A DNA stretch of 64,000 nucleotides from Thalia democratica (GCA_965202585.1 OZ241829.1:29202001-29266000); one strand, 5' to 3'; shown: positions 5,976 to 60,812, counted from the first letter of the stretch. The notes: generated from the letters alone by a model not told the origin. Translations and numbers: made by a program.

Positions 5976-6021
5976 ATGAGACTGCCACTCCTGCTGTGTA
6001 CCATTGCACTGCTCTTTGTAG
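5976..6021 (+). CDS. Exon 1: signal-peptide-like MRLPLLLCTIALLFV
   Basis: ATG, then Arg and a hydrophobic run, ending at a consensus G|GTAAGT donor (phase 1). This matches the phase needed by the first stefin exon, which has no in-frame ATG of its own. Confidence 0.7.
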
Positions 6022-9000
6022 GTAAGTTGTTTATTTTGTTTTCATTTATTGGCCAAATATAAAAAAAGGTTCTTATAAATGGTCCTTGGACCAAGTGTAC
6101 GAAAAAACCTTTTGGCTGTTGAATTTACACCGCTTGGATGCAGTTTAACGTCTTGTCCAGAACAAGACTTATATAAATATTAATACATAACCGTAAATTG
6201 ATCTTGCTTGGTTAATTATTTAACAATTTTTTTTATTTAAAAGATTGGTATCCTAAAGAATTTTATTGAAAACGTTTTTAAATTGCAGACATGAAAAACT
6301 TTGTTGCAAAATTAAATTATATAAATTTGATAAAAGAAAAATTCTTTAAATCGTAAATAACTTTAATTAACCATTTAAAATACAGCTCTAAGCTTATCTG
6401 AGCATATTATGTATTTCCTTATACGTAAGTTAAGATCAAATAGAAACTGTCTGTTTACAATACGTTTTTGTTTGTAAAAAGAAGTTTAGGTGTTTTTAGA
6501 GCTGGTTTTAAAAAAGCTTAAGAAAGCATGATAATTTTTCTATTTTATGAACTAAATTGGTATAAACTTTATATGAATTAAAGTTTTTACCAATGTAAAC
6601 TTTTGATTTTTTTTTGCATAAGGCGTTTTTGCCTATATTCTAACTATCAATTTTGAAAAAAAAAAATTGTATTTTCAGTCTTCAGCCTATGTTTTTTTTA
6701 ACTGCAGCCATATTAATTTTAACGTTAGTAAAACAATTTTTTTTTAAACTTTAGTTGCTCATTTAAACTCTTTATCGCAGGATTTAGTAGTGTTTAAAAA
6801 TTGATGTATATGTTAGGAATTTGCAACTTTTTTAGTTAAAAATTCATGATTTTTTTAAAACAAAACCGCAATAAAATAAAGTATAATAAGCATTACTGAG
6901 TATTGAAAGACAAATTTGTAATAACCATCAAAGTGTTAATAAATTACAGAAGGAACAAAATTATTGTTAATAAGTTACCGAGAAGCAAAAAAAAAATTAT
7001 CGTTTTAAATTTATAGCTATAAGTATACTTGTCTACGATTATACATTTAAATAAAAAGTTTTTTCGGCTTGTAATTTTGCTAATTTCTTAATACAAAAAC
7101 TATTAATTTCATCAGAAATTAAAGATCAGTCCTTAACTCATTGTAATATTTTACTTTTAAGCACTATATTCAGTCGTTAAAACAGATAGAGATATCATTT
7201 GTTGTAATTTAAAACGCAACACTAACAAAAGTGTAAAGTTATTTAAACCTAATATTGCATAATTCTTGAAACGTTTAAGTTTAAGTTTGAAACGATGAAA
7301 ATTCGCTTAATATCATAAAAACCATAAATGATACATTTGTATTTTTTTTTCATAAGATAAATAAACTTAAAATGTCGATGGTATAATGTTACATTTGTCA
7401 AAGTTTGTGGAAATATTTATGAGATTACTAGATTTTATCTAAGCCCTAATAAGATAAACTAGGCCAAATTTGTTTTTATGGTATGCAATTACCCGACTAT
7501 TATTACGTCATACACTATCTCGCTTTTTAACTGTACCTTGAAGTACATGGCATTCAACTTTTTATTTATTTCCAGAAAACACTTTCAACATTTTAAGGAA
7601 ACAAGAAAACAATCTTAGTAACTCGGTTTAATTTTTCAATAAATACTTTTAGCTCATTTTATTCTTTTTTTGAAATCACAAAGCAGCTATCTACAACAGC
7701 AAATTATTATTTTCCGGATAGCTGTTAACTACTTGAGCAAACGTCATTTCTTGCATAACTAAACTTTCAATAAACGACACTGCAAACGTGTCCTTGAGTC
7801 AGCGAAATTATCAGCAATCAAGAACTTGCACGTTTTTCGAACTAACACTTGTAACAAACGAACAGCATGCCGGCCGGAAAGTCCGCCCATCAAGCCGCTC
7901 CGCCCCTTCGCCTGGCTGTGGTCGGGGGTGCTGCCCGCCACCAGGGAAGTTCAGAAGGTCGCCGATGACGTGAGTGATTGGTTGCATTAGTTTGTTAAAG
8001 TTGTGATACAAGAAATTTTTCAACGGTAAAGTTTATTTTTTGTATATTTTTAAAGTCACTATGGAAACCAGTCTTGTTTTTTATTTTTAAGTTTTTTAAG
8101 ACAAGGTCTGTCGAAAGACCAAGTTATGTTTATATTGTATGTAAAGTTACTATTAAATCAGTCTTGCCTATTTGGTGCTTTAATTTTGACAGTTAAATGT
8201 TTGCTTCTGTAGTGTTAATTTAATTCATGTTTAACAAATAACGTGTTAAAACAAAAACATACAAACCTAGATAGTTTTGGGGCAAAATTTTGTCATGTTA
8301 AGAGTTAAAAAAAGTCTTTGTACCTTAATTTTCCAGGTAAAATGCGTGGTCGACTGGAGGTACAAAAACAGGATAAGAATGTACAAAGCCATCGAATTTC
8401 AAAGGCAAATTGTCGGCGGTACCAACTACAGAATAAAAGTAAGTTTTGAAAAGTTGCATGAACTGAAAAACATTTTACGTTACAAAAGGGGAAAAAAGTA
8501 TGTTATAACCATAGCTTAATAAAAGTAGCATGTGAGAGACTATAGACGGTAAAGGTAATTTAATTTATTTAAAAGCAAGGAATGATTAATTTTGAATACT
8601 TTTAAAAGACTAAGTATCTTTTTATATACTCTGAGCAACTTTTTTCAACTATTATCAAGTATGAAGCAACATCAAACTTAGAACAAAACTTTTATATAAA
8701 TTACTTCAACTAAGAACCATTAAGACTTAAAACATCGAATTCGTTTATAAACTTCAGCAACTAGTGAAGTTTACCAAGTTTGTTTTAATAACATCAAAAT
8801 CACCCAAAACATAAAATCTCAGCTTTAAGCGTTGATAATGGGTTTACTGTTCGCTCGTATTATTTACAAAATAACCAATTTTGAAAGTTTAATGCTTTTT
8901 TGCCATGCTAATCAAAGCATGCAGATGACCATAAGCACTAACCAGAAACAAAGTTGATCTGACTACCTTTAACAGTGTTTTACAAAAATACAATGCTACG

Positions 9001-12000
9001 ATGTTATCTTGTTTTATATGTTACGCTCTTATTGTAGCTTAAGTTTGAAACAAAAAACTAAAAATAATTTATAAATAGACTTTTACGCGTAGTTTTGGTT
9101 TACCGATGTTTCGATATGTCAATATGTGCAATGATATAAAAAACAAATATTGCAAGTTTCATGCACCCGACAAGTTTCAATAACCTCCGACAAAATCTAT
9201 CACAATTACAGTTTATTTTGTTAAACACCTATTTTCTATATTTTACAAAGAAAATATTTTTTGTTCATATCAAGTCATTTAAGTATTGTCTTTCATACAG
9301 CTTAAGATTATTGAAAGTTACTTTATTTATTTTTTCAATTTAAGTATGTTTGATGTTTTATTTGACAAAATCAAGCTTAATATAAATACGTATTCTAAAA
9401 TAATTTTGGAATTAACTAAAATTAAAATCTTATTTATTTAAAATCTTTTTTTTTAAATTACTTGAAAAACTTCAACACCATACCAAGGTTGCAATATTTT
9501 TTTTATCGATGCAAGTTTTAAATATTTCTAAATATTTATTTAAAACATTAATAACTTATAAAACAACTTATTCTCGAAAAACCACACTTTTAACAAGTTG
9601 ATCGTTTTGTCAATAATAATTCGTATCCAAACTTTACAAAAGATTTATTAGTTTTGAAACTCCTTTCAAAGTTAAAGTTTTTCATATTTAAATCCGATAA
9701 AACTTGTAAAAGCTGATGAGCTATATATTACCCTTTTTTAAATTGCTTGACTAAATTTTAATAAGTTAGAAAAATTTGTCGTGTCTCTTACCAAACTAGA
9801 CTAATAATTTACTGCCTCAAGATCAAAAGTTAATACATGCGTTTTTGAGACATATCAAAAGACTTTTAAACAAACAAAATGTTGAAATTAAAACAAATAA
9901 TGTAAAATGGTTCTATGTTTCTTATCAAAAGAAAGAAAAGTACAAAAAGTTCTAAAATTAAACTTTAACGAACTAATTATAAAGTTAAGCAAAAGAGGAG
10001 TTATGACAAAGCATATTAAAGTTATTGTATTCTCAACTATGATATAAATGAAAAAAAGTTTATAAAATTTAGTTATGATACTTTAGTAGAGCGACAATAA
10101 GAACTTTAAGGTTAAACTTAAAACTTATTTTGATAAACATTTTGTGCTTTGCGTCTAAAATTAATTTTAAAATAAACTTTAGTTTTAAATTAACCTTAAT
10201 AGTGGTTATGAAAAGTTTAATTTCATTTTGAAAGTTTAAACAAGATATTCCTTCTATTAAAAAAAATTATAAGAAGAACAGTGAAGGCTATAATATATAA
10301 TATTATTATTACATTTAGGTAAGAAACTAAGTTGATTTAAAAATAATTTTTTTGATAAGAAAAAAAAACAATCAATAGTTATAAATAAAACTGTTAGAAA
10401 CTTTAATAAATAATGAAATATACTAAAACATATATAAAACAAAAAAGTGTTTATAAATAAAAATAAGTAACTACACGCCACCAAATACATTTGTAAGCTT
10501 TAAAAAAACAATTCACAAAAACAACTTGATTTTAACAGATACAAATTGATGACGGTCTGTTTATAGCAGTTAGGGCTTTCAGATCGTTCCCGGGGGTTAA
10601 AGCCCAATTCAGGGGTTTCATGAAAAGAAACAAAATAGGCAAGAGACCTAGGAAATGCAAAGGAAAAGGAAGAGGTAAAGGTAAAGGAAAGTGCAAGCCA
10701 TCTGCAGGTGGTGACTTAGACGAAGAATTTGTAGATGTTATAGTTGGCCCTGGTGGTGAATCTCCTATTCCTATTGATACTTCTGTTGATATCGACGCTT
10801 CAGTTGATGTCGATGCTTCTGTTGATGTAGATGCTTCTGTTGATGTAGATGCTTCTGTTGATGTAGACGCTTCGGTTGATTTAGATGCTTCTGTAGATGT
10901 CGATGCTTCTGTTGATGTCGATGCTTCAGTTGATTTAGATGCTTCAGTTGATGTCGACGCTTCAGTTGATTTAGATGCTTCAGTTGATTTAGATGCTTCT
11001 GTTGATGTCGATGCTTCAGTTGATGTCGATGCTTCTGTTGATGTAGGAGCCTCAGTTGATTTAGATGCTTCTGTTGATGTAGACGCTTCAGTTGATGTCG
11101 ATGCTTCAGCTGATGTCGACGCTTCAGTTGATGTCGACGCTTCAGTTGATGTAGGCGCTTCAGTTGATTTAGATGCTTCAGTTGATGTAGGAGCTTCAGT
11201 TGATGTCGACGCTTCAGTTGATGTCGATGCTTCAGTTGATGTCGACGCTTCAGTTGATGTCGATGCTTCAGTTGATGTAGGAGCTTCAGTTGATTTAGAT
11301 GCTTCAGTTGATGTAGACGCTTCAGTTGATGTAGGAGCTTCAGTTGATGTCGACGCTTCGGTTGATGTCGATGCTTTTGTTGATTTAGATGCTTCTGTTG
11401 ATGTCGATGCTTCAGTTGATGTCGATGCTTCAGTCGATGTAGATGCTTCAGTTGATGTAGGAGCTTCAGTTGATGTCGATGCTTCAGTTGATGTCGACGC
11501 TTCAGTTGATGTCGATTCTTCTCTTGATGTAGGAGCTTCAGTTGATTTAGATGCTTCAGTTGATGCAGATGCTTCAGTTGATTTAGGAGCTTCAGTTGAT
11601 GTAGGAGCTTCAGTTGATTTAGATGCTTCAGTTGATGTCGATGCTTCAGTTGACGTAGATGCTTCAGTTGAAGTAGATGCTTCTGTTGATGTAGATGCTT
11701 CAGTTGATGTAGGAGCTTCAGTTGATGTCGATGCTTCTGTTGATGTAGATGCTTCTCTTGATATAGGAGCTTCAGTTGATGTAGATGCTTCTGTTGATTT
11801 AGATGCTTCAGTTGATGTAGACGCTTCAGTTGATTTAGATGCTTCTGTTGATTTAGATGCTTCAGTTGATGTCGACGCTTCAGTTGATATCGATGCTTCA
11901 GCTGATGTCGACGCTTCAGTTGATGTAGGCGCTTCAGTTGATTTAGATGCTTCTGTTGATGTCGATGCTTCTGTTGATGTAGATGCTTCAGTTGATGTAG

Positions 12001-15000
12001 GAGCTTCAGTTGATTTAGGTGCTTCTGTTGATGTCGATGCTTCTGTTGATGTCGACGCTTCTCTTGATGTAGGAGCTTCAGTTGATTTCGACGCTTCAGT
12101 TGATGTCGACGCTTCTCTTGATATAGGAGCTTCAGTTGATTTAGATGCTTCTGTTGACGTAGATGCTTCTGTTGATGTCGATGCTTCAGCTGATGTCGAT
12201 GCTTCAGTTGATGTAGGCGCTTCAGTTGATTTAGATGCTTCTGTTGATGTCGATGCTTATGTTGATGTAGATGCTTCAGTTGATGTAGGAGCTTCAGTTG
12301 ATTTAGATGCTTCTGTTGATGTCGATGCTTCTTTTGATGTCGACGCTTCAGTTGATTTAGATGCTTCAGTTGATGTAGGAGCTTCAGTTGATGTCGACGC
12401 TTCTCTTGATGTAGGAGCTTCAGTTGATTTAGATGCTTCTGTTGACGTAGATGCTTCTGTTGATGTCGATGCTTCAGCTGATGTCGATGCTTCAGTTGAT
12501 GTAGATGCTTCAGTTGATGTCGACGCTTCAGTTGATGTCGATGCTTCAGCTGATGTCGACACTTCAGTTAATATAGGCGCTTCAGTTGATTTAGATGCTT
12601 CTGTTGATTTAGATGCTTCTGTTGATGTAGATGCTTCAGTTGATGTAGGAGCTTCAATTGATTTAGATGCTTCAGCTGATGTAGATGCTTCAGTTGATGT
12701 AGGCGCTTCAGTTGATTTAGATGCTTCTGTTGATGTCGATGCTTCTGTTGATGTCGATGCTTCAGTTGATGTAGGAGCTTCAGTTGATTTAGATGCTTCT
12801 GTTGACGTAGATGCTTCTGTTGATTTAGATGCTTCAGTTGATGTAGACACTTCAGTTGATTTAGATGCTTCTGTTGATGTCGATGCTTCTGTTGATGTCG
12901 ACGCTTCTGTTGATGTAGATGCTTCAGTTGATGTCGACGCTTCTCTTGATGTAGGAGCTTCAGTTGATTTAGATGCTTCCGTTGACGTAGAGGCTTCTGT
13001 TGATTTAGATGCTTCAGTTGATGTAGGAGCTTCAGTTGATGTAGATGCTTCAGTTGATGTAGGAGCTTCAGTTGATTTAGATGCTTCAGCTGATGTAGAT
13101 GCTTCAGTTGATTTAGATGCTTCAGTTGATGTCGACGCTTCAGTTGATGTCGATGCTTCAGCTGATGTCGACACTTCAGTTGATGTAGGCGCTTCAGTTG
13201 ATTTAGATGCTTCAGTTGATGTCGATGCTTCTGTTGATGTAGATGCTTCAGTTGATGTAGGAGCTTCAGTTGATTTAGATGCTTCTGTTGACGTAGATGC
13301 TTCTGTTGATTTAGATGCTTCAGTTGATGTAGACGCTTCAGTTGATTTAGATGCTTCTGTTGATGTCGATGCTTCTGTTGATGTCGACGCTTCAGTTGAT
13401 GTAGATGCTTCAGTTGATGTCGACGCTTCTCTTGATGTAGGAGCTTCAGTTGATTTAGATGCTTCAGTTGATGTAGGAGCTTCAGTTGATTTAGATACTT
13501 CTGTTGATGTCGATGCTTCTGTTGATGTCGACGCTTCAGTTGATGTCGATGCTTCAGTTGATGTCGACGCTTCAGTTGATGTCGATGCTTCTCTTGATGT
13601 AGATGCTTCTGTTGACGTAGATGCTTCTGTTGATTTCGATGCTTCAGTTGATGTAGGAGCTTCAGTTGATGTCGACGCTTCAGTTGATGTAGGCGCTTCA
13701 GTTGATTTAGATGCTTCAGTTGATTTAGATGCTTCAGTTGATGTAGGAGCTTCAGTTGATTTAGAAGCTTCAGTTGATTTAGATGCTTCTGTTGATGTAG
13801 GAGCTTCAGTTGATGTCGACGCTTTAGTTGATGTAGATGCTTCTCTTGATTTAGATGCTTCAGTTGATGTCGACGCTTCAGTTGATGTCGATGCTTCAGC
13901 TGATGTCGACGCTTCAGTTGATGTAGGCGCTTCAGTTGATTTAGACGCTTCTGTTGATTTAGATGCTTCTGTTGATTTAGATGCTTCTGTTGATGTCGAT
14001 GCTTCTGTTGATGTAGATGCTTCAGTTGATGTAGGAGCTTCAGTTGATTTAGATGCTTCTGTTGATGTCGATGCTTCTGTTGATGTCGATGCTTCTCTTG
14101 ATGTAAGAGGTTCAGTTGATTTAGATGCTTCTGTTGACGTAGATGCTTCAGTTGACGTAGATGCTTCAGTTGATGTCGATGCTTCAGTTGATGTAGGAGC
14201 TTCAGTTGATGTAGATTCTTCTGTTGACGTAGATGCTTCAGTTGACGTAGATGCTTCAGTTGATGTCGATGCTTCAGTTGATGTAGGAGCTTCAGTTGAT
14301 GTAGATGCTTCTGTTGACGTAGATGCTTCAGTTGACGTAGATGCTTCAGTTGATGTCGATGCTTCTGTTGACGTAGATGCTTCAGTTGATGTAGGAGCTT
14401 CTGTTGACGTAGGAGCTTCAGTTGATTTAGGCGCTTCTGTTGATGTAGGCGCTTCTGTTGATGTAGATATCGATGCTGGTTTAGATATTGATGCCGGTTT
14501 AGATATTGATGCTGGTTTAGATGTTGATGCCGGTTTAGATATTAATGCTGGTTTAGACATTGATGCTGGTTTAGATATTGATGCAGGTTTAGATATTGAT
14601 GCAGGTTTAGACCTTGAAGCTGGTTTAAATGTTGATGCTGGTTTAGATGTTGATGCTGGTTTAGATATTGATGTTTCTGTCAATGTTGATGCTGGTTTAG
14701 ATATTGATGCTGGTTTGGATATCGATGCCGGTCTAGATATTGATGCAGGTTTAGATATTGATGCAGGTTTGGACCTTGACGCTGGTTTAGATGTTGATGC
14801 TGGTTTAGATATTGATGCTGGTTTAGATATTGATGCTGGTTTGGATATCGATGCCGGTCTAGATATTGATGCTGGTTTAGATGTTGATGCCGGTTTAGAT
14901 ATTGATGCTGGTTTAGACATTGAAGCTGGTTTAGATATTGATGCAGGTTTAGATATTAATGCAGGTTTAGACCTTGACGCTGGTTTAGATGTTGATGCTG

Positions 15001-18000
15001 GTTTAGATGTTGATGCTGGTTTAGATATTGATGTTTCTGTCAATGTTGATGCTGGTTTAGATGTTGGCGCTGGTTTAGATATCGATGCCGGTCTAGACAT
15101 TGATGCTGGTTTAAATGTTGAAGCTGGTTTAGATATCGATGCCGGTTTAGATATTGATGCCGGTTTAGATATTGATGCTGGTTTAAATATTGATGCCGGT
15201 TTAGATGTTGATGCTGGTCTAGATATCGATGCTGGTTTAGATATCGATGCTGGTTTAGATATTGATGCAGGTTTAGACCTTGACGCTGGTTTAGATGTTG
15301 ATGCCGGTTTAGATATTGATGCTGGTTTAGATATTGATGTTTCTGTCAATGTTGACGCTGGTTTAGATATTGACGCTGGTTTAGATATTGATGCCGGTTT
15401 AGATATTGATGCAGGTTTAGACATTGACGCTGGTTTAGATGTTGATGCTGGTTTAGATGTTGATGCTGGTTTAGATATCGATTCTGGTTTAGATGTTGAT
15501 GCCGATTTAAATATTGATGCTGGATTAGATATTGATGCAGGTTTAGACATTGACGCTGGTTTAGATATCGATGCCGGTTTAGATATTGATGCTGGTTTAG
15601 ATATCGATGCTGGTTTAGATATTGATGCCGGTTTAGATGTTGATGCAGGTTTAGATGTTGATGCTGGTTTAGACCTTAACGCTGGTTTAGATATCGATGT
15701 TTCCGTTAATGTTGATGCCGGCTTAGATATTGATGCTGGTTTAGACATTGACGCTGGTTTAGATATCGATGCTGGTTTAGATATTGATGCCGGTCTAGAT
15801 GTTGATGCTGGTTTAGATATTAATGCAGGTTTAGATGTTGATGCTGGTATAGATATTGATGCAGGTTTAGACCTTGACGCTGGTTTAGATATTGATGCTG
15901 GTTTAGATGTTGATGCTGGTTTAGACCTTAACGCTGGTTTAGATATCGATGTTTCCGTTAATGTTGATGCCGGCTTAGATGTTGATGCCGGTTTAGATAT
16001 CGATGCTGGTTTAGATATTGATGCCGGTTTAGATGTTGATGCCGGTTTAGATTTTAATGCAGGTTTTGATGTTGATGCTGGTTTAGATATTGATGCAGGT
16101 TTAGACCTTGATGCTGGTTTAGATGTTAATGCTGGTTTAGATGTTGATGCTGGTTTAGATGTTGATGCCAGTTTAGATATTGATGCTGGTTTAGATATCG
16201 ATGCTGGTTTAGATATTGATGCCGGTTTAGATGTTGACGCTGGTTTAGATATCGATGCCGGTCTAGATATTGATGCTGGTTTAGATATTGATGCAGGTTT
16301 AGACCTCGACGCTGGTTTAGATATTGATGCTGGTTTAGATGTTGATGCAGGTTTAGACCTTGACGCTGGTTTAGATGTTGATGCTGGTTTAGACATTGAT
16401 GCTGGTTTAGATATTGATGTTTCTGTAAATGTTGATGCTGGTTTAGATCTTGACGCTGGTTTAGATATTGATGCCGGTTTAGATATTGATGCAGGTTTAG
16501 ACCTTGACGCTGGTTTAGATATCGATGCCGGTATAGATATTGATGCCGGTTTAGATATTGATGCTGGTTTAGATGTTGATGCTGGTTTGGATCTTGCTGC
16601 TGGTTTAGATATTGATGCCGGTTTAGATATTGATGCCGGTTTAGATATCGATGCTGGTTTAGATGTTGATGCTGGTTTAGATATTGATGCCGGTTTAGAC
16701 ATCGATGCTGGTTTAGATATTGATGTTTCAGTTAATGTTGATGCCGGTTTAGATATTGATGCCGGTTTAGATATTGATGCTGGTTTAGATATCGATGCTG
16801 GTTTAGATATTGATGCCGGTTTAGATATTGATGCCAGTTTAGATATTGATGCCGGTTTAGATATTGATGCTGGTTTAGATATTGATGCCGGTTTAAATAT
16901 CGATGGTGATTTAGATATTGATGCAGGTTTAGACATTGACGCTGGTTTAGATATTGACGCTGGTTTAGATATTGATGCTGGTTTAGACATTGATGGTGGT
17001 TTAGATATCGATGGTGGTCTTGATGTAGTTGGCGGATTCAGTGCAGTTATGAAAGCCACTGCAGACATCCAGAGCATCTGCGATGAAGTCAGTTTCTTTT
17101 ATTTTATTCTATCTTGTAGATCAATTTGTTTAAGCTTTTAACGTATTTTTAAAATTTGATTGCATTTAGATACTAGGTTTATACAAACTTTATTTCTTTT
17201 TCTAATTTTAAAACTTATATTATGAATTTAAATACTAGCTGATACAAGTTCAGTATTCGAAAATGTAAAATTTCACAACTGACGTATCACAAAAATTTTA
17301 ATCTAATATAAACCATATTTTTTTTCATAATTTAATCTATAATTCTCAAGGTCAAATCTCAAGTTGAATTTCACATGGGAACAAGTTTTGACATGTTCAA
17401 AGCAGTAGAATTTTCAACCCAAGTTGTAGCCGGGTTGAACTACAAAATAAAGGTTCATAGCTAATCGTGCTTTTATAACTTATAAGTTTACAATTTTACA
17501 AAAAAGTTCACTGATGTTTGTTTTACACCTCTAAATGCTGTTTATAAAACTCTCATTTAAGTTAGTTAAAACATGTAATATTCGAATATTAAATAACATT
17601 TTTGTTAGTTATATTGCTTCTTTTATATTAAAATATTAAAGATGATGTTTTATCAAACACCATTCTCAACTTTGAAATTATCTTTAGATTTTTTTTTTGT
17701 CATTAATCTGAGATTAAAAGTATTAATTGTTGTTAACAACTCAAGCTATACATTAACTTAAAACTAAAGTTGTTTCTTTGTATAAAAACTAAACTCAGTC
17801 TGTGAAAAAAAAGTCAACATTTTAAACGCTCAGAACATTTTATTATGTGACATTAAAATATTTATTGGTGTATGCAATAAATTTCATACATTGCTTATCA
17901 GTTCAATAAAAAGCAACCATTTCAGAATCTGCTTATACTCTTTCACACAGAAAGTAGTCATATAGACATCATTAGTTTTCAACTCAAACCGTTTTTTTTC

Positions 18001-19682
18001 TGATTCAGGTCCAGATCGGCATGAAGGCCTTCCTTACCGTCGTCGTCTACTCCTCGCTGGACGGCTCCCTCTCCCTCATGGAGATCTACGACGGACCCTT
18101 CAAGGTTTATTTAAACAAATACGTATTCAAAAATCCGATGCTTATCTATTGGGACGTAAAAAGCCAGTAAAATATAAAAAAGATATTAAAAAATGTTCTA
18201 TTCTTACAACTTATATTTTCACACTCCCACAAACTTTTTAATACCAACGCATTCCACAGAGTGTATAGCATTGCATTATTATCAATTTTAATTACTCCCT
18301 TCAAGGTCCCGATGATCATGGTGGACCCGACGGAAGTGGGACTTCCCGAGCTGGTCGTCAGGGAAATTCCCGACTTCGGAATCCAGATCCAGCCCGCCAG
18401 GTTGGGTGATGACGTTGTGGGCGGATTCGGAGCTGTCGCGAAGGCCACCTCGGGAATCCAGCAGATCTGCAACCAGGTTTCGTGTTTACTCGAGCGTACG
18501 GTTTTTCAGCTTTTTAAAATTAAACTTTGTTTTTGATTTTCACTCTCGTAGATCGTATTGTTGGTGCAACTTGGCAACGAAAAAAGAAAGTTGGTGTAGC
18601 TTGATTCACCGCGTTTTTTATTTATAGTTAAATAATTTTTTTTGTCGAGCTTTAAGGTTTGTTTACTGATAAAAGTTTTTGTTGCGCAAAATTGCTTTTA
18701 GATAGTAAATATAAGCGAGTGAATAGTTGTTGCGTATAAACCGTTTATCTATATTTTTTGATACCACTTGAAACAAAGTCTCAGTTTTGTACACTTAATG
18801 TTTTAAACAACAGCAAAGTTCTGTTTTTCAACTCAAAACTATAGAAACATCTTGTTGCAGCTGAAATCCGCCGTTGAAGCTAGCGCCGGTACAGTTTACG
18901 GAATGTTCAAAGCAGTGGAATACTCCACACAGGTTGTAGCTGGAATGAACTACGAAATAAAGGTAATAAGTTATACAGTTTTTTTTTTTAAGCACTCAGT
19001 GAAATAAAATATACGCTTAAAGAACTCCCATGATAAATAACGCTGCACACAAACAAACAAATATCTAATTTTCTGACCAAAAATAATAATAAAAATTTCA
19101 AACAAAAATTTCAGTATTAAAAGATATAAATTGAAGAAAAAAACGGGTTCAAGTACATTATTATTTATACTTTGATTTCATGATGTAAAAGTATTATTAT
19201 TTATACTGTTTATTCATGATTACAAGTGCATTACTATAATTATTATTTTTTTCATAAATACAAGTGTAACATTATTTATATTACTTTTCCATGATTACAA
19301 GTGTATTGCTAATAATAATATGAATTATACTATTGTTCCGCAGGTGCAAGTTGGCGACGGCTCCTTCATCACCTTCACCTGCTTCGAGGGCTTCGACGGC
19401 TCCCTCTCCTTCACCTCGCTGGTGTCCGGCAGCGTGGACGTCGACACGGACAACGCCCAGCTGGACGGATCCGTCAACGTGGACGCGGACGCGGGAAAGG
19501 CCGGCGGCAAGCTGAGCCTGAGCCTGGACGGGCCGGGCAAGATCGGCGGCGGGCTGAGCTTGAGCTTGGGCGGCGGAAAGGCCGAGGGCAAGGTCGGCGT
19601 GTCGGCGGGCGGGGAGACGAAGGCCGAGGTGGGGGTGAAGCAGGAGAAGAAGAGGGGAAAGTTCTTCGGTTTCTTCGGATGA
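5976..19682 (+). CDS. Secreted triple-stefin (type-1 cystatin-like) protein with giant acidic hexapeptide repeat; join(5976-6021,7866-7969,8337-8438,10539-17087,17351-17452,18009-18104,18306-18476,18861-18962,19344-19682), about 2,536 aa
   Basis: All introns are GT-AG and phase-compatible. There are three QxVxG motifs (QIVGG, QVVAG, QVVAG), each in a 102-nt exon bounded by phase-0 introns as in vertebrate CSTA/CSTB exon 2. Stefin N-terminal helix motifs are present (PATREVQKVADDV, GGFSAVMKATADIQSICDEV, GGFGAVAKATSGIQQICNQL). The exon-2 acceptor is uncertain: 7803, 7815 and 7866 are all phase-compatible. Confidence 0.88.
8337..8438 (+). CDS. Stefin domain 1 middle exon (VKCVVDWRYKNRIRMYKAIEFQRQIVGGTNYRIK)
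   Basis: ttttccag acceptor, GTAAGT donor, 102 nt, QxVxG motif. Confidence 0.9.
10539..17087 (+). CDS. Giant 6,549-nt exon: end of stefin domain 1, basic K/G/C segment, 347 acidic hexapeptide repeats, start of stefin domain 2
   Basis: The tttaacag acceptor is in frame with the ORF at 10620. IQIDDGLFIAVRAFRSFPG resembles the third stefin exon. The exon ends ICDE|GTCAGT, at the conserved stefin intron-1 position. Confidence 0.9.
10776..14465 (+). repeat. Coding tandem repeat block A: 205 x 18 bp, consensus (D/G)ASVD(V/L)
   Basis: GAT GCT TCW GTT GAT GTM units. The 18-bp register holds at 10776, 12558 and 14448. Confidence 0.97.
14472..17027 (+). repeat. Coding tandem repeat block B: 142 x 18 bp, consensus DAGLD(I/V/L), with seven DVSVNV variant units
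   Basis: GAT GCT GGT TTA GAT ATT units; 2556 nt = 142 x 18. Confidence 0.97.
17351..17452 (+). CDS. Stefin domain 2 middle exon (VKSQVEFHMGTSFDMFKAVEFSTQVVAGLNYKIK)
   Basis: 102 nt, AG/GT bounded, QVVAG motif. Confidence 0.92.
18861..18962 (+). CDS. Stefin domain 3 middle exon (LKSAVEASAGTVYGMFKAVEYSTQVVAGMNYEIK)
   Basis: 102 nt, ttgttgcag acceptor, GTAATA donor, QVVAG motif. Confidence 0.92.
19344..19682 (+). CDS. Terminal exon: end of stefin domain 3 plus Gly-rich tail ending KKRGKFFGFFG*
   Basis: ttccgcag acceptor; VQVGDG start like the third stefin exon; strongly G/C-ending codons; TGA stop; AATAAA at 19899-19904. Confidence 0.88.
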   Translation: MQVGDGSFITFTCFEGFDGSLSFTSLVSGSVDVDTDNAQLDGSVNVDADAGKAGGKLSLSLDGPGKIGGGLSLSLGGGKAEGKVGVSAGGETKAEVGVKQEKKRGKFFGFFG

Positions 19683-21250
19683 GGGGTTTTCCCTTTTAAA
19701 GCTTCCCGGTTTTCCCCCTGAGTGAAAATTTGTTTCTTATACGCAGCTTTTCTCAACAAGTCAAAAAATATTTTTCTTAGATAGATTGTGTGTGTGTTGT
19801 TTAGCTTTTGTGTTTAAATGAACTATAAATAACCTTGCTTTTTATTTTAACATTATCGTTTTCCTGTGACATTAGTTCAAAATATATTTAATTGCTTCAA
19901 TAAAACATTAGTCAAACTACTTGTTTTTACTTTAATTTAATATTAAAGCATCTGATGATCCTAAAAACTACATTGTGTGTCAGACACAAATGTCCTAAAC
20001 TTTATTCTGAATTCCAAAACTGTTTACTAAACTTTCCATACACTTAGTGATGTACTTTAACCAGCTAAATATTTTAAACTCTTCAATATTCCTTCTTTTT
20101 TTATCTATGTTAAATATAAAAAACATAAATTAGCTTAATTAGTTGTATGATCAGTTTTTAAGTGTGAAAACATGTCAACAATCGAAATCATAGACTTAAA
20201 ATATTCAAGTTTTTAAAACTAGTTAAACTTTTAACCTAAACTTAAAATAAATCCAAAGTCATATTTTCAAATTAAGCCTACTTTAAAACAAAAAAAAATT
20301 CTATATTCTATTTTTAAACCAGAAGTAGTAAATTAAATTTTTGGTTAAGTTTTAAAAAATGAATCAAAGTTAATAGTAGTTTTATAGTAGACTCATTGTG
20401 AAACACTCAAAGATCAAAAAATTTTAGAAATTTGCATAAGAAAGTTTAAAAGTACTGCTGTGAAATTACACTATTTAAAAAGTATAAAATATTTTGTAAT
20501 ACATGTGGGTAAAATAATAGTCATTAGAATTACCTTTGAAAACTAGTTAATAAGTATACATTTTTTTTAATAGTATAGTAACCTTTTGTAAGCAGCTAAA
20601 AATATAAACAGGTATAAAAGTTATAAATAACAAAATAAGCCTTTAAATTAAAAAAATTGCGAAAATATTTAAAGTTTGAAATATAGGAACAAAATAATAG
20701 TTCTATAAATCTTCGTTTAACTGTGTCTAGTATGAGCTTAAAATCTCCCGTAAATTTTACCTAAGACATTTATTTGTTCTTCTTTTTAAATCCCAGTTTT
20801 AAGATTTAGAATTTTACTTAGGTTTACATGATCGCAGCCCAGTAGCAGGCCGGATTTCAATTACTTTTTTAACATTAGCGGCTCGGTCACTTTCTTTTTG
20901 CGGGCCGTACGTTGCTCACCTTTGTATAAAATGCACTTACTATAAATTTTTGTATCAATAACTACAAAATTACTAAAAAAAGTTATCCATAATAAATTAT
21001 CTAAGATTCATTTAAATACTATTTATCTAAGCTTGAGTTCAATAACATCAAAATAATTTTATATTTATACTTTTTATGAATAAATCTGAAAAAGGTGAGC
21101 TTTAAGAATTCATTTCTTAGATATCATATTGGTCACAAGAAGCTAAATCAAACTTAAATTATTTTAATTATAAAGATATTTATAATATTTAAGAATTCCA
21201 ACTGACAGAAAAACCTTATCAAAAAAAGCACAAACATTTTTATCTAGACT

Positions 21251-23738
21251 CTATTTAATTCTCCTGCCCAAATAAACCAGAGGGTTTCTGCTCTTGTTAA
21301 TGAAACTCTCGCCCATCAGTGTTTTGCACTCTTCCTCCATCTCGTACATGCTGCGCACTTTCACCGTGGCAATGTTCGAGTTGGCCTGACACAAAAGCCG
21401 GCAAAGACCGATTTTCCACTCTTTGAAGCCCAAGTCGATCTGTTTTTGTTGACAAGTATCGTTGTGTTAAGTAATTAGTAGGAAAAGAATGCAGAGGTTG
21501 TGTGTATTGTAAGTTCAAGTTTGGTAAATAAAAAAAGTTTGATTGCCATTTTTTCTTTTAAGACTACTGTGGCATACTTTCCTGTTTTTTTGATAGAAGA
21601 AGTACTGAAAAATAATACAGATTTTAACTAAATATTTGTATGTTTTATAGTTTTTCGAGTAAATTTTAATACTCTTTGTTCGAATAACCATTGTAAAACA
21701 AGTTTCAACCTTTTTGTGGATAAAAACAGAACTATATTAAACTTAATTAAAAAAAGATCCCGTTTTTCAAACTTTTTGTAACAAACAAAACTGTTAAAAA
21801 GACTAAAGGCTGATCAAAACTGTTTAAACAATAAAACAAAATCACAAACGTGTTCCAACTTCGCGTTGTTTTTCAGCAGCTGAATGACGTCATGGCAGCT
21901 GAGTACCTCTTCGTCGAAAATCACCGCGTTCCTGACGACCAGCGACGCGTTGAAGACGTTTATCTGCCGCAGCTCCCTGCACCTCGCCGTGACGTCGTTC
22001 AAAATTTCCCCCGAGATGTCGGCGCCGCTCAAGCGTATCGTTTCGAATTGAGAAAGGAGCGGGCGGAAGGCTCGGAAGATTTTCTCCGTTTTCTCGCAGC
22101 ACTCGGCAAAGTTGAACTTCAACTTTCCCTCGCCGACGTCCAAGTCGAGAAAGAAGTTCTCCTCCTCGCAGTGGAACTTGAGCGCGCTGAGGCCGGGGCA
22201 GCCGGCCATGATGTCGGCGATGACGGTGACGTCATCGACGTCCTCCGGGTCGGTGACGCGCAAGTGACGCAGGAAGCAGCAGTTTTCGGGGACGAGCTTC
22301 AAACAGCCGCCGGACACCGTCGTGTTCGTCAGGTCCAGCCTCTCGATCTGGGGGTTTTCCAAAACGAACCGGCGCAGCTCCGCATCGTCCAACGAGCAGT
22401 CGATGAGGTCGAGGCTGTTGAGCTTCATCTCGCTGACGACTCTCAGGCACTCGTCGGTCACGTGCTCCTTCACTCTAAGTTCTTTGAGGTGAGGGCAGTT
22501 TTTCTGCAGGTTCGCGTAGAAGCGCAGAGCGGCTTCGGGCTCGGGGTCGCACAGACTGCAGTCGACGAGGTGCAGTGACGTCAGCGAACGCAGGTTGCTG
22601 ACGTCATCGAGCATTCGCTCATCAAGGTCGTGGTAGGTTTTCAGTTGCAAGCGTTGTAGGTTGCTGTTGTTTCTGATGAAGCTGGAAAATAATAGAAGTT
22701 GTTGAGTCAAGTTTAAAGTAATTGATATGTTGTTTTTTTTTACACCTAGGTTTGTAGTTTTCAAACAACTTTTAGCTTTAAAGTCAAACCTTTAGTTTAA
22801 TATGAAGTGTAGCACTAGTTTTTAAGTTAAGTTTAAAACATTGATTCATGGGATATAGTTTAACACAATTTAGATTTTTTGTTTATTTATTGATAAAATA
22901 AGTAAATATATGTTACTTGACACAAAGTATAATAAGGAAACCTCATTATTAGAACTCTTTTACTTACTGGAACTAAATTATGGATTTGTAATGGTTATAA
23001 AATATCTTTTCAAAATTTAAAAACAGAATCGATATTTTCAATGTAAGCAACTAAATAAACAAAAAGCTGTTAAAGTTTATTTTTTCCGTAAAAGTAAAAG
23101 AGGTATTGTGCAAGACAATAAAAAAACTATCAAAGTTTTAGTGGTATTTTATCATGTTTCAACGACAAACGCCTACAGCAAAAAACTAACAAAAAAGTAC
23201 TTAAATCGATTAATTTTCGGTTTCTAAGCTCAAAGTTAGAACCTCAACTGCAAATTATATGGCTCCTTGGTTTAGTTTAGGATTTATCGCCCGAAGACCA
23301 CAAATTTGTTTAATCCAAAAGCTCCTTGTTTTTTTTTTAAATTATACAAAAACTAAAACTTGTTTAAAGCCACAACTTAGAAAACGATTTTTTTCAAAAA
23401 AACATACTCAGATTCAAAATTACTACATTTTAATTAAATTTCAGAACAAACCAGCATAAGGCCGACATGGCGGTTTCGTCCTGCGATCCGTCGATGACGA
23501 CGCTCAAGTGCCGCAGGTCGGTGTTTCCCGCCAAAAACGAGTTCACGCGCTCCCTGCCCCGCTCGCAAAACTTGGAAAAGACGATTTTCATGGACTTCAA
23601 GCGCCGCAGGTAGCCGGTTGCCGATTGACGGCACGCGATGCTGGCCTGTGAAAAGCTGATCAGCTCCTGAAAGCTCAGCTGGGCGAATATTTTCTCGGCA
23701 ATGTGCCGTTGACACATGACGAACTCAACTAGATCCAT
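21251..23738 (-). CDS. F-box/leucine-rich-repeat (FBXL-like) protein; complement(join(21251-21439,21850-22681,23452-23738)), about 435 aa
   Basis: N-terminal F-box-like motif RHIAEKIFAQLSFQELISFSQASIAC; LRR-type segments (LRSLTSLHLVDC, CPHLKELRV, LNSLDLIDC, IERLDLTNT); GC-rich exons; both introns GT-AG with matching phases (2, 0). Confidence 0.82.
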
Positions 23739-31279: not shown

Positions 31280-34200
31280 ATGTCCAGCTACAACAATGAC
31301 AGTTATTTGCAAAACAGCTTTGTCTTTCCTAACTCTAATTACACGGCTCCAGACAATGTAAGTGAAAATAATTTGACAAAATACGTTTTGAAAAGTAAAT
31401 TTGAATTGAATGCAGCTTTACACAAACAGGTTTAAATTGGTCTATTAGTGAAGCATGTTAAAAAAACCATCAAAAAATTTTGCTCTAAAAGTAGTTTACT
31501 TTAGTTTGTCTTATAAGTACAAAGTTGTATTTAAATATAAAAAACCTGTCATTTTATATTAAAGCAATTAAGTTTGAAAATTGTGCTTAAAACTACTTTA
31601 ATATCTCAAATGCTTATTGTTCGGAAAAAAGTATGTTTTTTTTTGAACAAGCAAAATTTATATGTGCTTATCGAACTTATTGTACTTTTGTAGACTTATA
31701 ATGTACATTAAGCTTAATTTCAATCTTTTATGAATTCATCTAAAAATTTTAAACAAAATTTCCTGAAACAGGTTCGTAGTGCGTATCCTCAGCGGAACCA
31801 ACAAAATGGGATGAACGATTTCGTGAATACTCCAGTTCCTACGAACACAAATTCTGCTTTACCAGTTTGTTTTTGTACCAATCAGCATTGTTATTGTATG
31901 CCAGTTAACTCTAACTCGAACAGCTCTGTTGTGCAAGGTTACAACCTACCATCACAGTTAAACAGAAACGGTGGTGTTTATTTAGCTAGTAGATCTAAAC
32001 AAATGCGTACTTGTGATTTTCAAAACGACATGGTTAGAATTAATTAAATTTAATTTTGCTATGAAATATAACTTTTTAAACTATTATTATTATACTGTTT
32101 GTAGTGGAATGTTAGACTCAGTCATTAAAACCCGAGCCACTTAAACAGAACACATAAGAAGAAAAATGAAAACAAATAAGTTTATTTAAGATAAAATTAA
32201 ATAAATAAGAAGTAGAAAAAAATTAAATTTATAAAGAGTTAATCAATAAATCTAAACTTATTTGTTTAATATAAAAGGCGATAGCTTCGTACATACAAAA
32301 AAATGTAAGTCCATACCTAAAAAAAAGTACAACTGAATAGATGATTTTCCAAGAGCATTGTTTATAGGACATAATGCAATTGTACAAAACCATTAAAAGT
32401 AAATTACTTAGTCTGTTAAGGTGGAGGCGTAAGAAAATAAAATTAATTCCTAAAATAAATACTAAATAGAATAATGAAAGAACCAATAAATTATTTAGAT
32501 GAGACAAATACAATATTAAGTTTTTATTTATTTATGCTTTTTGTTTTTAATGGAAATTTATTGAATTTAACTTATATTTGAAGTATCTAAATAAAATAAT
32601 TTTAGTTCTAAGCGAAAATGATCCACTTTCTCGCACGACACGACATCCTGTGGTAACTTGTACCACATAGTCTTTTCTCTGTGAAAAAATTAATCTTGTG
32701 ACTGACTGTTGTTTAAGTTATTTATATATTTTAATTTTCTATTATTTCCTTTTAAGTGAAAAAGCTAATGAATGATTGGAAAAATCTTTATATTTGCTAT
32801 AGATAGTTTCATAAAGAGTAAACAAATCAAATTCCCATTTTCCATGTACTAGAGACTTCAATTCAAGCTTACTTAATCTATCATTATAAAACGTAATCAA
32901 TATGTTACAACGATAACATATAAAACGGGTAAAATTTATTTGCACAGATTTAATTTTATCAATGTCGTTTTTTAAATAGGGGAACCGTATTTGGGTATTC
33001 TACTCAAGCTAATGACGAACGTATATTCTAAATAGTTTTGTAAGAACAGTAGCTGAATTAGTTTTAAAACTGTTTAGTATTTTAAAAGATGAAATTTGTG
33101 CAACTTTATGTAAAAATAATTTATGTGTTCATTCCATTTTAAATTTTCAAAGATATATGTTTCCAAATATTTAAAAATTAAATGTTGTTAACTTAGTGTT
33201 ATTGATTAATAAGTCGTTTTGTTTTTCTTATTGGTTAGAATTTTACATTTTTTAAGAGTCTAATCACGTTTTCTTGATTTTAGCCATTTGTAAATATTAT
33301 CTAGAGTAAGTTGTAAAATAATATTTGACACACCAAAAATTTTTGCATCATCTGCAAATAAATTCATATTTATTTGAATATCAATGTTTGAATTAACATC
33401 GTTTACGTACAAAAAAAAAGAAGGGGACCAATTACACTACCTTCTTGTCTTCCGCTGTATATTTTAGAGTCTGATAGAGTATCATCAACGATTAATCTTG
33501 TGATCTTTTAATTAAAAAATATTAAACCAATTTAGTAAGGATTCATTTAGTCCATTCTGACTCAAAATTTCAATAATTGTTTGTGTGATATTGAATCAAA
33601 GGCTTTTGTAATATCAGTGTAAACAACTATAACATATTCGTTTTCGAGATAAGGAACTATCTATGAATGTAAACATATTAACATTTGGATGTTTTACGAG
33701 TGGTTAGGGACTAAACCAAATTGATTATTAGATAGCAGGGGCGTCGCGTTGGGTGTTGCACTGCCGCAATTGCACCACCTTAAAGTTATGTAAGAAAAAA
33801 TTAAGTATCCATAATGTTTTCGTTAATTTTTAGAACAAAATCTCTTATAAAACTCCAATTTAGAAAACGACCATTTTGCTCACTTCACTACCGCAAACTC
33901 TTAGCTGACTGCCGCAAATGAACTCAAAACAGCAAAATTTCTTCAAGAATTACCGCAAAATCAATATCTTGCGGTAATTAAGCTAAGTTGAAAATTCCCT
34001 TAAACAGTACAGGTTTAAGTATCATTCTTCAAGTTATTGTAAACAAAAAATGAAAACAAAGCCAAGCAGAGCACAGGCGATTCAAGCAGAGGCAACTCCA
34101 GCAGAAGCAACTCGAGAAGAGGCAACTCGAGAAGAAGCAACTCGAGAAGAAGCAACTCGAGAAGAAGCAACTCAAAAAGAGGTAACTCGAGAAAAAGCAA

Positions 34201-59000: not shown

Positions 59001-60812
59001 AGAAGTTATTAGTAGTGTTGTAAGTTTTACGCTAATTCTTCACTTTGTACTTAAACTTGTTTTTAGAGATCGTTTTAACACAAACTTTCAAGCGGCTTAG
59101 TTCAACAATGTTGAACTTAACTTTTTCGACTTAAGATGCATTTTCTTTGAAATTAAAATTACCTACCATAAGCTAAACAATAATTAAAAAAAAAGAGCTT
59201 ATATGTTTAAATACTAACAGTGCACAACAATTTTCAACAGCTCACTGCAGCTGAATTAAAAACACAACTGAATGAAATAAACATTTCGATGGTATTAAAC
59301 CTAGATGGGAGTTTCTGTTTTGAGACTGAAGATAAATGGAACCGTGGTCAGTTTGTATAGTGTTCAGCTTTATACTATCCTTTGATATTTCATAACACAC
59401 TCAGCGTAATTGAAATTAACTGATTTAACTGGTTAGAAGTTAATTAATTGAAAGTGCTACGTGACAGGTTACATGACAATTCAAATTCGGACAACTCAAA
59501 TTCGGACAATTCAAATTAAAAAAAAATATTTAAAACACTATATCTCAAAAAATAACATAAATTTGAGAAAAATAAAAAAAGTTTATGTAGATCTGATTAA
59601 AACATACAAGCTACTTTTTCTTTTATGCAAAATCTTAAATACTTTTAAGGAAATTTTAAAATTACTAAAAATAACTATATTTTTTATTTAATTTGAGCTA
59701 TATCTCAAAATGTATATAATATTTTGCAAAAAGAAAAAAAAAATGGCTTGTAGATATTAATACGATCTACATATGTATTTTTTATATTAGACAAATATGC
59801 ATTACTTTTTTAGTTGTGGCCCTTTCAATTTTTTTATAAAAATTTGAATTGTCGGAATTTGAGTTGTCCGAATTTGAATTGTCATGTAACCTGTCACGTA
59901 GCACTATCAATTAGTTAACGAATTTAAACAGTCGTGCACCCTACGTGACAATATCAAAGCAAGTTACTAAATCGCTTAGACAACCTATAAAAATATAAAA
60001 ATGTTGCAACTATTCTGCAATTGCTATGATATATCAAAAACGAGAATATAATACTCAAAGGATTAAAGATAGCAAACGCAGTGTACGCGTACTTGGTTCC
60101 AGTACTGATAATTCTGATGTGTTACATGGCAGTCATCAGGAAACTTTATTTGAAACACCGCAACTCCTCAGTCGGCAGACATTCCAAATCCACGTTGAAT
60201 AAAGTCACCAGAACCGTCTGTGTTCTAGTAAGTAAACTTTCAAACTTTAGTTTTTTATTTATCTTGTTTTATTCGTTTTATTTATTTATGTCTCATGAAA
60301 ATTTATAAACATACATCAGAAATCTTTTCTTTACATCCTCATTAATTTCTCATTAGGCTTTTTTCATTTTAAGGAAATAATTATGCCAAAAATTTTAAGT
60401 TTTCTGTTTTTTCAATGAAATCAAAATGTTTTATACGAATAATAGTATTCTAATTACAACTCAAGCTTCAAATTTAATCTTCAAAAATGGTTCAAATCTA
60501 CTTAAAATCCACGTTTTTTCTAAGAAAATTTTCATCCACCAGATAGCGGTGTTCATGGTGGACATGATGATGTACCACGCGATGAAAATTCCCGCCATTT
60601 ACTCACCGCAGATGCTGGACGGCGCGACCCTTATCGTCTTGCAGAGCTTCTCAATCCTCCTCGCCTCCTCCAATTCCGCGGCGAATCCCCTCGTCTACGC
60701 CTTCTACGCCAAAAACTTCCGCGGCGACTTCCGCAAGGCGGCGGGAATCCCCGCGAGCAAAACTTCCAAGCGCTTAAAGTTCCCGAAAAAGACGGCAAAG
60801 GACGTCGCCTGA
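56064..60812 (+). CDS. Class-A neuropeptide GPCR, galanin/allatostatin-A/kisspeptin-receptor-like; join(56064-56291,57809-58010,58802-58931,59980-60227,60543-60812), with two apparent 1-nt deletions (about 56195 and 60038)
   Basis: N-terminal sequons NLS/NMT/NVS; TM1 GIIGNFLV; TM2 LLNLACADVFFLLFYVPVQ; WALGRFMC; DRY split by a phase-2 intron; TM5 AYLVPVLIILMCY; TM7 SNSAANPLVY. Introns are GT-AG and phase-compatible. It could be a pseudogene allele if the frameshifts are real. Confidence 0.82.
59439..59919. mobile_element. MITE/foldback element with about 80-bp terminal inverted repeats in GPCR intron 3
   Basis: Left GTTAATTAATTGAAAGTGCTACGTGACAGGTTACATGACAATTCAAATTCGGACAACTCAAATTCGGACAATTCAAATT matches the reverse complement of the right end with 3 mismatches. 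The TSD is ambiguous (GAA or TTAA). Confidence 0.88.

Follow-up and report, generated by a model that had tools for sequence, protein, structure and literature searches.

Stefins, the cystatin B type of cysteine-protease inhibitor (MEROPS I25A), are ~100-residue domains marked by an N-terminal Gly and a QxVxG loop; classically they occur singly and without a signal peptide. Secreted stefin-like inhibitors ("cystatin-like stefins") occur in flukes and myxozoans (PMC9986714). Dentin phosphophoryn and mollusc Aspein/Asprich represent a different type of secreted protein, the very Asp-rich, short-period polyanion that binds cations. Here, we describe a gene with features of both, located in a window of 64,000 nucleotides (the whole stretch of DNA analyzed; Thalia democratica, GCA_965202585.1 OZ241829.1:29202001-29266000). 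Its predicted product carries three stefin domains, the first of which is separated from the second by a 2,084-residue acidic hexapeptide array. We favor, at a probability of roughly one-half, the reading that this is a secreted polyanionic scaffold displaying cystatin domains, probably condensing with the Ca2+ and Mg2+ of seawater.

The product shares with cystatin B and the stefins their domain length, N-terminal Gly, and loop, and with the fluke secreted cystatin-like stefin FhCyLS-2 a signal peptide. It departs from the classical stefin form through its three domains and its signal-peptide-like start (MRLPLLLCTIALLFV), and from known stefins and multi-domain cystatins through the array. 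The array is like dentin phosphophoryn and Aspein/Asprich in being secreted, very Asp-rich, and of short period, with cation binding putative here and argued by analogy; those proteins lack hydrophobic residues and are disordered, whereas every second array residue is V, A, L, or I, and we see no homology. The (Asp-Ser-Ser)n sequence of dentin phosphophoryn lies largely in one big exon, as the array does here. Designed acidic beta-sheet peptides, of which the amphiphilic Pro-Asp-(Phe-Asp)5-Pro from the Rapaport group is reportedly one, have the same strict hydrophobic/acidic alternation and gel as beta-sheet nanofibers when Ca2+ screens their carboxylates, which is the mechanism that we propose for the array; they are synthetic and 10-20 residues long, whereas the array is natural, about 100 times longer, and has every third polar place taken by Ser or Gly. 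With Ca2+, alternating hydrophobic/acidic peptides such as (LE)8 give nanofiber hydrogels (PMC6473879), and RTX repeats fold only upon Ca2+ binding (PMC6473919). The repeats of the RTX beta-roll (GGxGxDxUx) are acidic and secreted; they stay unfolded as long as Ca2+ is absent and take up their fold once outside the cell. RTX proteins are bacterial, with a period of 9 and a Gly-rich Ca2+ loop, whereas the array has a period of 6 (18 bp) and no GGxG, so it is not a member of that group.

We modeled the gene as nine exons on the + strand, with 7,611 coding bases (~2,536 codons) and one terminal stop. All eight predicted introns are GT-AG, their phases fit throughout, and there is no internal stop. 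From its N terminus, the product reads as signal peptide, stefin 1, basic linker, (DASVDV)x205, Asp-Ile, (DAGLDI)x142, stefin 2, linker, stefin 3, and a Gly/Lys-rich tail. The features are given below, with the GC content of third codon positions abbreviated as GC3:

5976-6021, + strand: exon 1, start codon and signal-peptide-like MRLPLLLCTIALLFV (judged by eye), then a GT donor
7866-7969, + strand: exon 2, N-terminal part of stefin 1 (...SGVLPATREVQKVADD); GC3 0.85
8337-8438, + strand: exon 3, 102 bp, middle part of stefin 1 with the QIVGG loop; Pfam Cystatin PF00031
10539-17087, + strand: exon 4, 6,549 bp or 2,183 codons, C-terminal part of stefin 1, linker, array, and N-terminal part of stefin 2
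10620-10697, + strand: basic Lys/Arg/Gly linker MKRNKIGKRPRKCKGKGRGKGKGKCK, 26 residues with two Cys, just ahead of the polyanion (called from sequence only)
10776-14465, + strand: block A, exactly 205 units in register with no remainder, consensus GATGCTTCAGTTGATGTA, encoding DASVDV
14466-14471, + strand: Asp-Ile step, GATATC, between blocks A and B, with the two-residue phase kept
14472-17027, + strand: block B, exactly 142 units with no remainder, consensus GATGCTGGTTTAGATATT, encoding DAGLDI
17022-17087, + strand: N-terminal part of stefin 2, DVVGGFSAVMKATADIQSICDE, continuous with the last repeat unit
17351-17452, + strand: exon 5, 102 bp, middle part of stefin 2 with QVVAG; donor of RNA joint 17452/18009
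18009-18104, + strand: exon 6, C-terminal part of stefin 2; GC3 0.94; RNA joints 17452/18009 and 18104/18306
18306-18476, + strand: exon 7, linker and N-terminal part of stefin 3 (DVVGGFGAVAKATSGIQQICNQ); RNA joints 18104/18306 and 18476/18861
18861-18962, + strand: exon 8, 102 bp, middle part of stefin 3 with QVVAG; RNA joints; Pfam Cystatin
19344-19682, + strand: exon 9, C-terminal part of stefin 3, tail VDVDTDNAQLDGSVNVDADAG..., and stop; RNA joint 18962/19344

Exon 4 runs from an AG acceptor to a GT donor, is in phase 0 at both ends, and has a single frame without a stop. It opens with the C-terminal third of stefin 1 (IQIDDGLFIAVRAFRSFPG...) and closes with the N-terminal fifth of stefin 2. 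Across the array, a single + frame is open from 10620 to 17141 (2,173 codons), and the end of this open reading frame (ORF) and two downstream exons read as stefin, first GGFSAVMKATADIQSICDE, then VKSQVEFHMGTSFDMFKAVEFSTQVVAGLNYKIK, then VQIGMKAF.... We read the array in the + frame because exon 4 must join the C-terminal part of stefin 1 to the N-terminal part of stefin 2. A second long ORF overlaps it on the opposite strand:

12257-17077, minus strand: antisense ORF, 1,606 codons, STSTEA/KPASIS, mucin-like, its third codon positions coinciding with those of the + frame

The existence of this ORF, and a ratio of non-synonymous to synonymous diversity (piN/piS) as low as in the + frame, would speak for a minus-strand mucin-like gene (STSTEA/KPASIS), and a non-coding satellite would likewise deny the + frame. 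We consider either almost certainly wrong. Both the openness of the antisense ORF and its low piN/piS come for free because its wobble positions are shared with the + frame; for the same reason, an attempt to choose the strand from synonymous versus non-synonymous variation failed, as both frames look constrained, with excess third-position variation and a low piN/piS in each. The antisense frame has one stop among 345 units, and the ORF ends at 12257-12259, within the array. Its replacements are radical (I/T/R/M, S/P/K), the introns and the joints seen in RNA are GT..AG on the + strand, and only the + frame links the two stefin parts within one exon. Splicing and the stefin frames settle the strand, and the array is protein-coding on the + strand. 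The antisense ORF is a by-product of the shared wobble positions and a trap for gene callers.

The sequence was found in two poly-A marine metatranscriptomes and in DNA runs of two organisms, all from marine plankton, and RNA and DNA contigs were compared over 16980-19800 only. Within this interval, RNA contigs join exactly at 17452/18009, 18104/18306, 18476/18861, and 18962/19344, all GT..AG and accounting for four of the eight predicted introns, and RNA depth is zero in the intron bins. RNA contigs cover 16980-17024 and continue as repeat, and one contig reaches 19707. These contigs place the array end in poly-A RNA and confirm the gene model in its downstream half. DNA of the second organism spans the locus at ~90-97% identity, with the array ending in the same DVSVNV/DAGLD units, and a 109-residue product 87-89% identical to exon 9 is encoded on Tara Oceans metagenome contigs. 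The frame in which the first-pass annotation had read the repeat has held up, being coding, represented at the array end in poly-A RNA, and part of a protein with a signal-peptide-like start; what that annotation lacked was the context, in which the repeat appears to link stefin (cystatin B-type) domains.

Two further observations concern these contigs. One metatranscriptome contig follows the last repeat units to 17025 and then continues with 233 letters (CCAATCGCTCAGCAGCC...) unlike the window; it may come from a paralogue, or from a transcript of another species in which the same repeat is followed by a different downstream part. Within intron 8, at 19157-19305, lies an AT-rich tandem repeat of 36-37 bp; DNA contigs of both organisms skip or join backward here, so that its copy number varies.

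Exons were searched separately against Pfam, so the Cystatin scores (cut-off, 22.2 bits) refer to exon pieces of 34 residues. Exons 5 and 8 pass, at 22.9 bits (E 1e-4) and 25.7 bits (E 1.4e-5), and exon 3 falls just below, at 19.5 bits (PF00031, E 1.2e-3). Each stefin has a QxVxG first hairpin loop (QIVGG, QVVAG, and QVVAG) and, by eye against cystatin B, the N-terminal Gly before the first helix (SGV, VVGGF, and VVGGF). Exon 5 (34 codons) aligns over positions 1-34 with residues 23-56 of human cystatin B (PDB 2oct, E 5.4e-5). The middle exons of all three stefins are 102 bp each, and the introns of human CSTB presumably lie at places matching these exon boundaries. Stefins 2 and 3 are the closest pair, with 15/22, 23/34, and 11/32 identical residues in their three parts. 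The gene is thus a triplicated three-exon stefin gene with an added signal-peptide exon. A multi-stefin protein with an acidic array was found neither in the protein searches nor in the literature search for the repeat. We rejected a role for the array as a polyprotein spacer with the basic linker as a convertase site: the linker has no clear R-x-K/R-R, and 2,084 residues are far too long.

The tail encoded in exon 9 reads VDVDTDNAQLDGSVNVDADAG..KLSLSLDG..GLSLSLGG..KVGVSAGG..KAEVGVKQ..GKFFGFFG. Over 19434-19679 it consists of four short alternating segments parted by Gly-rich turns, and it is 89% conserved in the Tara Oceans relative P0158. Its VDVD..SVNVDADAG stretch after stefin 3 resembles both the hexapeptide and the DVSVNV units of block B, so that, by resemblance, the array may plausibly have been seeded by a stefin tail.

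Tandem Repeats Finder reported the array as two 18-bp repeats, at 10776-14468 (205.2 copies, 84% matches, 0% indels, score 4738) and at 14464-17018 (141.9 copies, 83% matches, 0% indels, score 3361), and we found no indel across its 6.25 kb. The 2,084 residues are D625 V384 A339 S214 L205 G179 I99 N20 F6 E6 T5 Y1 R1, with no Pro, Cys, Trp, Lys, His, Met, or Gln. Odd positions hold D/S/G/N/E/R in 1,038 of 1,042 cases and even positions V/A/L/I/F in 1,030 of 1,042. Alternation is thereby kept at 2,068 of 2,084 residues (16 exceptions), its phase continuous through the Asp-Ile step, and it is inherent in one amplified six-residue unit, so that 347 units are not 347 independent events. The frequent variants of block A are GASVDL, DASVDL, and GASVDV, and substitutions throughout are mostly exchanges among V/L/I and of D for G, N, or E. 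These counts bear out in full what had first been observed in the sequence: polar residues at odd and hydrophobic residues at even positions of both unit types; 347 units, which we cut in register as 205 of DASVDV type and 142 of DAGLDI type; no net indel in either block; GATATC (Asp-Ile) at 14466-14471 as the sole, phase-preserving step; V/L/I and D/G/N/E swaps as the main replacement classes; and the absence of Pro, Cys, Trp, and Lys.

Block B also contains seven DVSVNV units that punctuate it at spacings of 20, 17, 20, 14, 26, and 17 units, and units at equal offset from these markers are somewhat more alike than others (~0.88 versus 0.83). This pattern looks like a worn higher-order repeat of ~17-20 units. 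The best lags in a unit-lag identity scan were 27 units for block A and 20 units for block B.

Database searches placed the repeat apart from known sequences. A word search of 5.8 billion proteins gave only look-alikes at 24-41% identity, the window's own protein being absent from that collection. An exhaustive phmmer search of 1.84 billion representatives returned 1,294 matches at E<=1e-3, none of which had more than two motif copies or ~30% Asp. JGI metagenomes held no match to the exact DNA pattern and matched the protein patterns at only 30-31% identity. Repeat pieces searched against PDB sequences yielded nothing informative, matching only a VGPEAG repeat and CFAP91, and the few papers in a literature search that contain one of the hexapeptide strings are unrelated to the repeat, which they leave undescribed. 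As far as these searches reach, the repeat appears to have no known relatives, with no protein among the 1.84 billion representatives carrying it. The best database matches are two uncharacterized proteins of the spider Stegodyphus (P0001 and P0002; E 4.7e-105, 38% identity over the matched stretches). These have ~3,000 residues in modules of ~200 residues, each module with an alternating run, and one of the two has a signal peptide. Like the array, they look secreted and alternate D/N/G with A/V/L/I, in runs of up to 58 residues; unlike it, they have 8% Asp, no hexapeptide period, and no cystatin domain. We regard them as apparent compositional look-alikes and a shorter natural example of the pattern, not as homologues.

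Structure prediction yielded no fold for the array. AlphaFold2 modeled 216 residues of block A, run as a single sequence, with a predicted local distance difference test score (pLDDT) of 41.5 and a predicted template modeling score (pTM) of 0.11, and 180 residues of block B, run with a ten-segment array self-alignment, with a pLDDT of 34.4 and a pTM of 0.10; DSSP assigned no secondary structure to either. Pfam searches with 120-residue array pieces gave sub-threshold matches only, including LbH_EIF2B at 14 bits (E 0.052; cut-off, 54 bits) and, at E 0.13, the T4 gp5 beta-helix, with Hexapep unlisted. With the whole of exon 4 as query, DNAJC11_beta-barrel, Porin_3, and DUF481 passed their cut-offs only by summation, with no single passing stretch, and DUF7223 had seven passing stretches. 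We set these beta-barrel families aside as compositional matches: on 120-residue pieces, DNAJC11_beta-barrel reached 19 bits and DUF7223 15.5 bits, below the cut-off of 27, and Porin_3 and DUF481 were unlisted.

These results bear on the beta-solenoid that the first-pass annotation had proposed. Such a protein would fold by itself into a monomeric rod; in a left-handed beta-helix, one possible form, each turn would take up three hexapeptides, giving a length of ~56 nm and Asp ladders on the faces. The array shares with the left-handed beta-helix hexapeptides (Hexapep/LbH) a period of 6, an aliphatic residue at i, and a small residue at i+4, with small and aliphatic residues at every second place; V-D-A-S-V-D presumably fits the hexapeptide-transferase motif [LIV]-[GAED]-X2-[STAV]-X, which is a lead and not a test. 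The alternation and hydropathy of the array are also compatible with a beta-solenoid or functional amyloid, and the LbH_EIF2B and T4 gp5 matches, weak as they are, point in the same direction. Unlike those families, the array has no hidden Markov model match above threshold and no predicted helix, and AlphaFold2, which readily builds beta-helices from repeats, built none in two runs. Unless cations were bound, the six Asp in each 4.8-Angstrom turn would repel one another strongly, and the unit-lag scan found no three-unit super-period in either block. A self-folding beta-solenoid is unsupported by this modeling, and we judge it very unlikely.

The physical chemistry of the array is unusual for a polyanion. 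Its net charge is about -630 and its grand average of hydropathy (GRAVY) +0.45, corresponding to a scaled hydropathy of 0.55 and a net charge per residue of 0.30. On a charge-hydropathy plot, 0.30 lies below the boundary of 0.38, placing the array on the "ordered" side, unlike the usual disordered polyanions. From this profile, strong dependence on counter-ions is to be expected.

Variation among the units was used to ask what is conserved, a comparison that the first-pass annotation had suggested. Synonymous diversity (piS) was 0.30 in block A and 0.375 in block B, with a non-synonymous diversity (piN) of ~0.10, giving piN/piS of 0.33 and 0.27, respectively. The 66 distinct codon variants comprised 19 synonymous changes, 39 replacements that keep the residue class, and 8 that change it. 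Class-changing types (8/66, 12%) fell short of the ~27% expected when stops are included (binomial P=0.003). None exceeded five copies, while synonymous and conservative variants reached 30-70 copies (class-changing versus synonymous, Mann-Whitney P=0.02). Replacement of V/L/I by a polar residue was seen in none of 694 unit positions (V/L at position 4, V/I at position 6), and D to G was common while D to V or A was almost absent. By this comparison, the polar/hydrophobic register appears to be protected and the exact side chains not. The suggested comparison gives piN/piS of 0.27-0.33 and depleted class changes, together with a neutral share of synonymous types; of the proposed selection for amphipathic strands, protection of the pattern is borne out (P=0.003), and beta structure is not predicted.

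The favored reading, a secreted scaffold displaying cystatin domains, combines these properties as follows. The 2,084-residue repeat would be a secreted polyanion, with a net negative charge of ~630 and aliphatic side chains at half of its residues. In the absence of counter-ions, charge repulsion would keep the isolated chain unfolded, which fits the AlphaFold2 result. Ca2+ and Mg2+ of seawater or of the secretory pathway would neutralize the Asp face, and the two-residue alternation of the neutralized repeat would favor amphipathic beta-strands that pack into sheets or a gel. In the extracellular matrix of a mucus net, tunic, or gut lining, the long, cation-loaded scaffold would hold the three cysteine-protease-inhibitor domains, and selection would maintain the hydrophobic/polar register while tolerating V/L/I and D/G/N/E swaps.

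Several observations weigh against this reading. The exon 4/5 joint (17087/17351) and exons 1-4 were unseen in RNA, where contigs were compared over 16980-19800 only. AlphaFold2 gave no beta structure for the array, though it models neither ions nor intermolecular sheets and is hence weak evidence against cation-triggered beta-assembly; no positive result speaks for such assembly either. The share of synonymous types (19/66, 29%) is at the neutral level of 27%, and the 28 singleton variants, five of them radical, show no clear depletion. The count by occurrence, in which class-changing variants make up 15 of 562, is inflated by concerted evolution. Finally, at 0.11-0.13, the repeat does not differ in GC3 from the neutral AT-rich background, whereas the other exons have 0.38-0.94, which fits a fast-evolving, weakly constrained segment. 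We describe the constraint as only moderate because the synonymous share is neutral and singletons show no clear depletion of radical changes. For orientation, GC3 is 0.30-0.56 in the non-repeat start of exon 4 and in exons 1, 3, 5, and 8. It is 0.77-0.94 in exons 2, 6, 7, and 9, which stand out like islands against the AT-rich repeat in one and the same gene.

Most of these observations would suit a permanently disordered polyanionic spacer or cation buffer, that is, a long, charged, protease-resistant tether or a Ca2+/Mg2+ sponge between the inhibitor domains, which never orders and in which alternation is mostly a by-product of hexapeptide amplification. The low pLDDT (34-41) without secondary structure, the alternation intrinsic to the amplified unit, the neutral synonymous share, the lack of a clear depletion of radical changes among singletons, and the background GC3 are all in line with it, and the Asp-rich matrix protein Aspein is described as an acidic intrinsically disordered protein (bioRxiv 10.64898/2026.06.03.729799). 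Such a spacer has no need for the depletion of class changes (P=0.003) or for the lack of any V/L/I-to-polar change in 694 positions, and an array with half of its residues V/L/I/A, a GRAVY of +0.45, and a place on the "ordered" side of the charge-hydropathy plot does not look like one. On balance, we find a disordered spacer possible but doubtful.

The secreted cystatin-displaying scaffold could also be taken further, as a cation-switched natural beta-sheet material that its ~630 negative charges keep soluble in the cell and that assembles in seawater Ca2+/Mg2+ into amphipathic sheets or fibers, as a part of the feeding net, tunic, or gut lining of the salp, with the stefins cross-linking or capping it by domain swapping and their inhibitor activity protecting it. 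In this full form, we consider the proposal unlikely.

As a further alternative, the Asp lattice might act on CaCO3 or some other mineral as a nucleator or inhibitor, a role that has been proposed for dentin phosphophoryn and the Asp-rich proteins of molluscs. The array has 30% Asp, carries Asp, Ser, or Gly at every second residue, is predicted to be secreted, and resembles the classical (Asp-Y)n idea for shell proteins. We know of no mineralized structure in salps, and if the animal is a salp, a mineral role is unlikely. The window, at ~25% GC with much GC-richer exons, fits the salp Thalia democratica, whose genome has 25.3% GC and coding sequences with ~17% higher GC (PMC13746493), and the sequence occurs in marine plankton runs. 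Fusion to three cystatin domains is also without parallel in matrix proteins. Taken over all, a biomineral matrix protein is highly improbable.

In this gene, a wild animal keeps 2,084 near-perfectly alternating residues in frame and transcribed, with pattern-breaking changes apparently purged. Stefins would be put to a new use, three of them secreted on one giant polyanionic tether, and the product is a candidate constituent of salp secretions. Amyloid-like structure is promoted by alternating patterns, which are otherwise disfavored or under-represented in natural proteins (PMC2680634). If the cation switch is real, the array would exceed in length every natural sequence known to alternate polar and non-polar residues, a type otherwise selected against as amyloid-prone (PMC2680634), and a thaliacean secreted matrix would have a first molecular component. 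A chain that orders with divalent cations would parallel, in nature, the designed acidic beta-sheet hydrogel peptides and would offer a genetically encoded, seawater-triggered material. If it stays disordered, it would still be an unusually hydrophobic polyanion that probes the limits of charge-hydropathy rules.

Elsewhere in the window, we noted three further features:

21814-22764, minus strand: single-exon ORF of 316 codons, leucine-rich by eye, with no Pfam match
57826-58068 and 60426-60812, + strand: two exons of a rhodopsin-family G protein-coupled receptor (Pfam 7tm_1, E 9e-14 and 5e-3)
34070-34410: tandem repeat of 15/30/45 bp (AGAAGCAACTCGAGA...), ~23 copies, no indels

The 316-codon ORF has relatives in marine data at 85% identity (ENA ERZ17174914) and 64% identity (Logan ERR1719427). 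The 34070-34410 repeat may lie in a coding exon of another gene.

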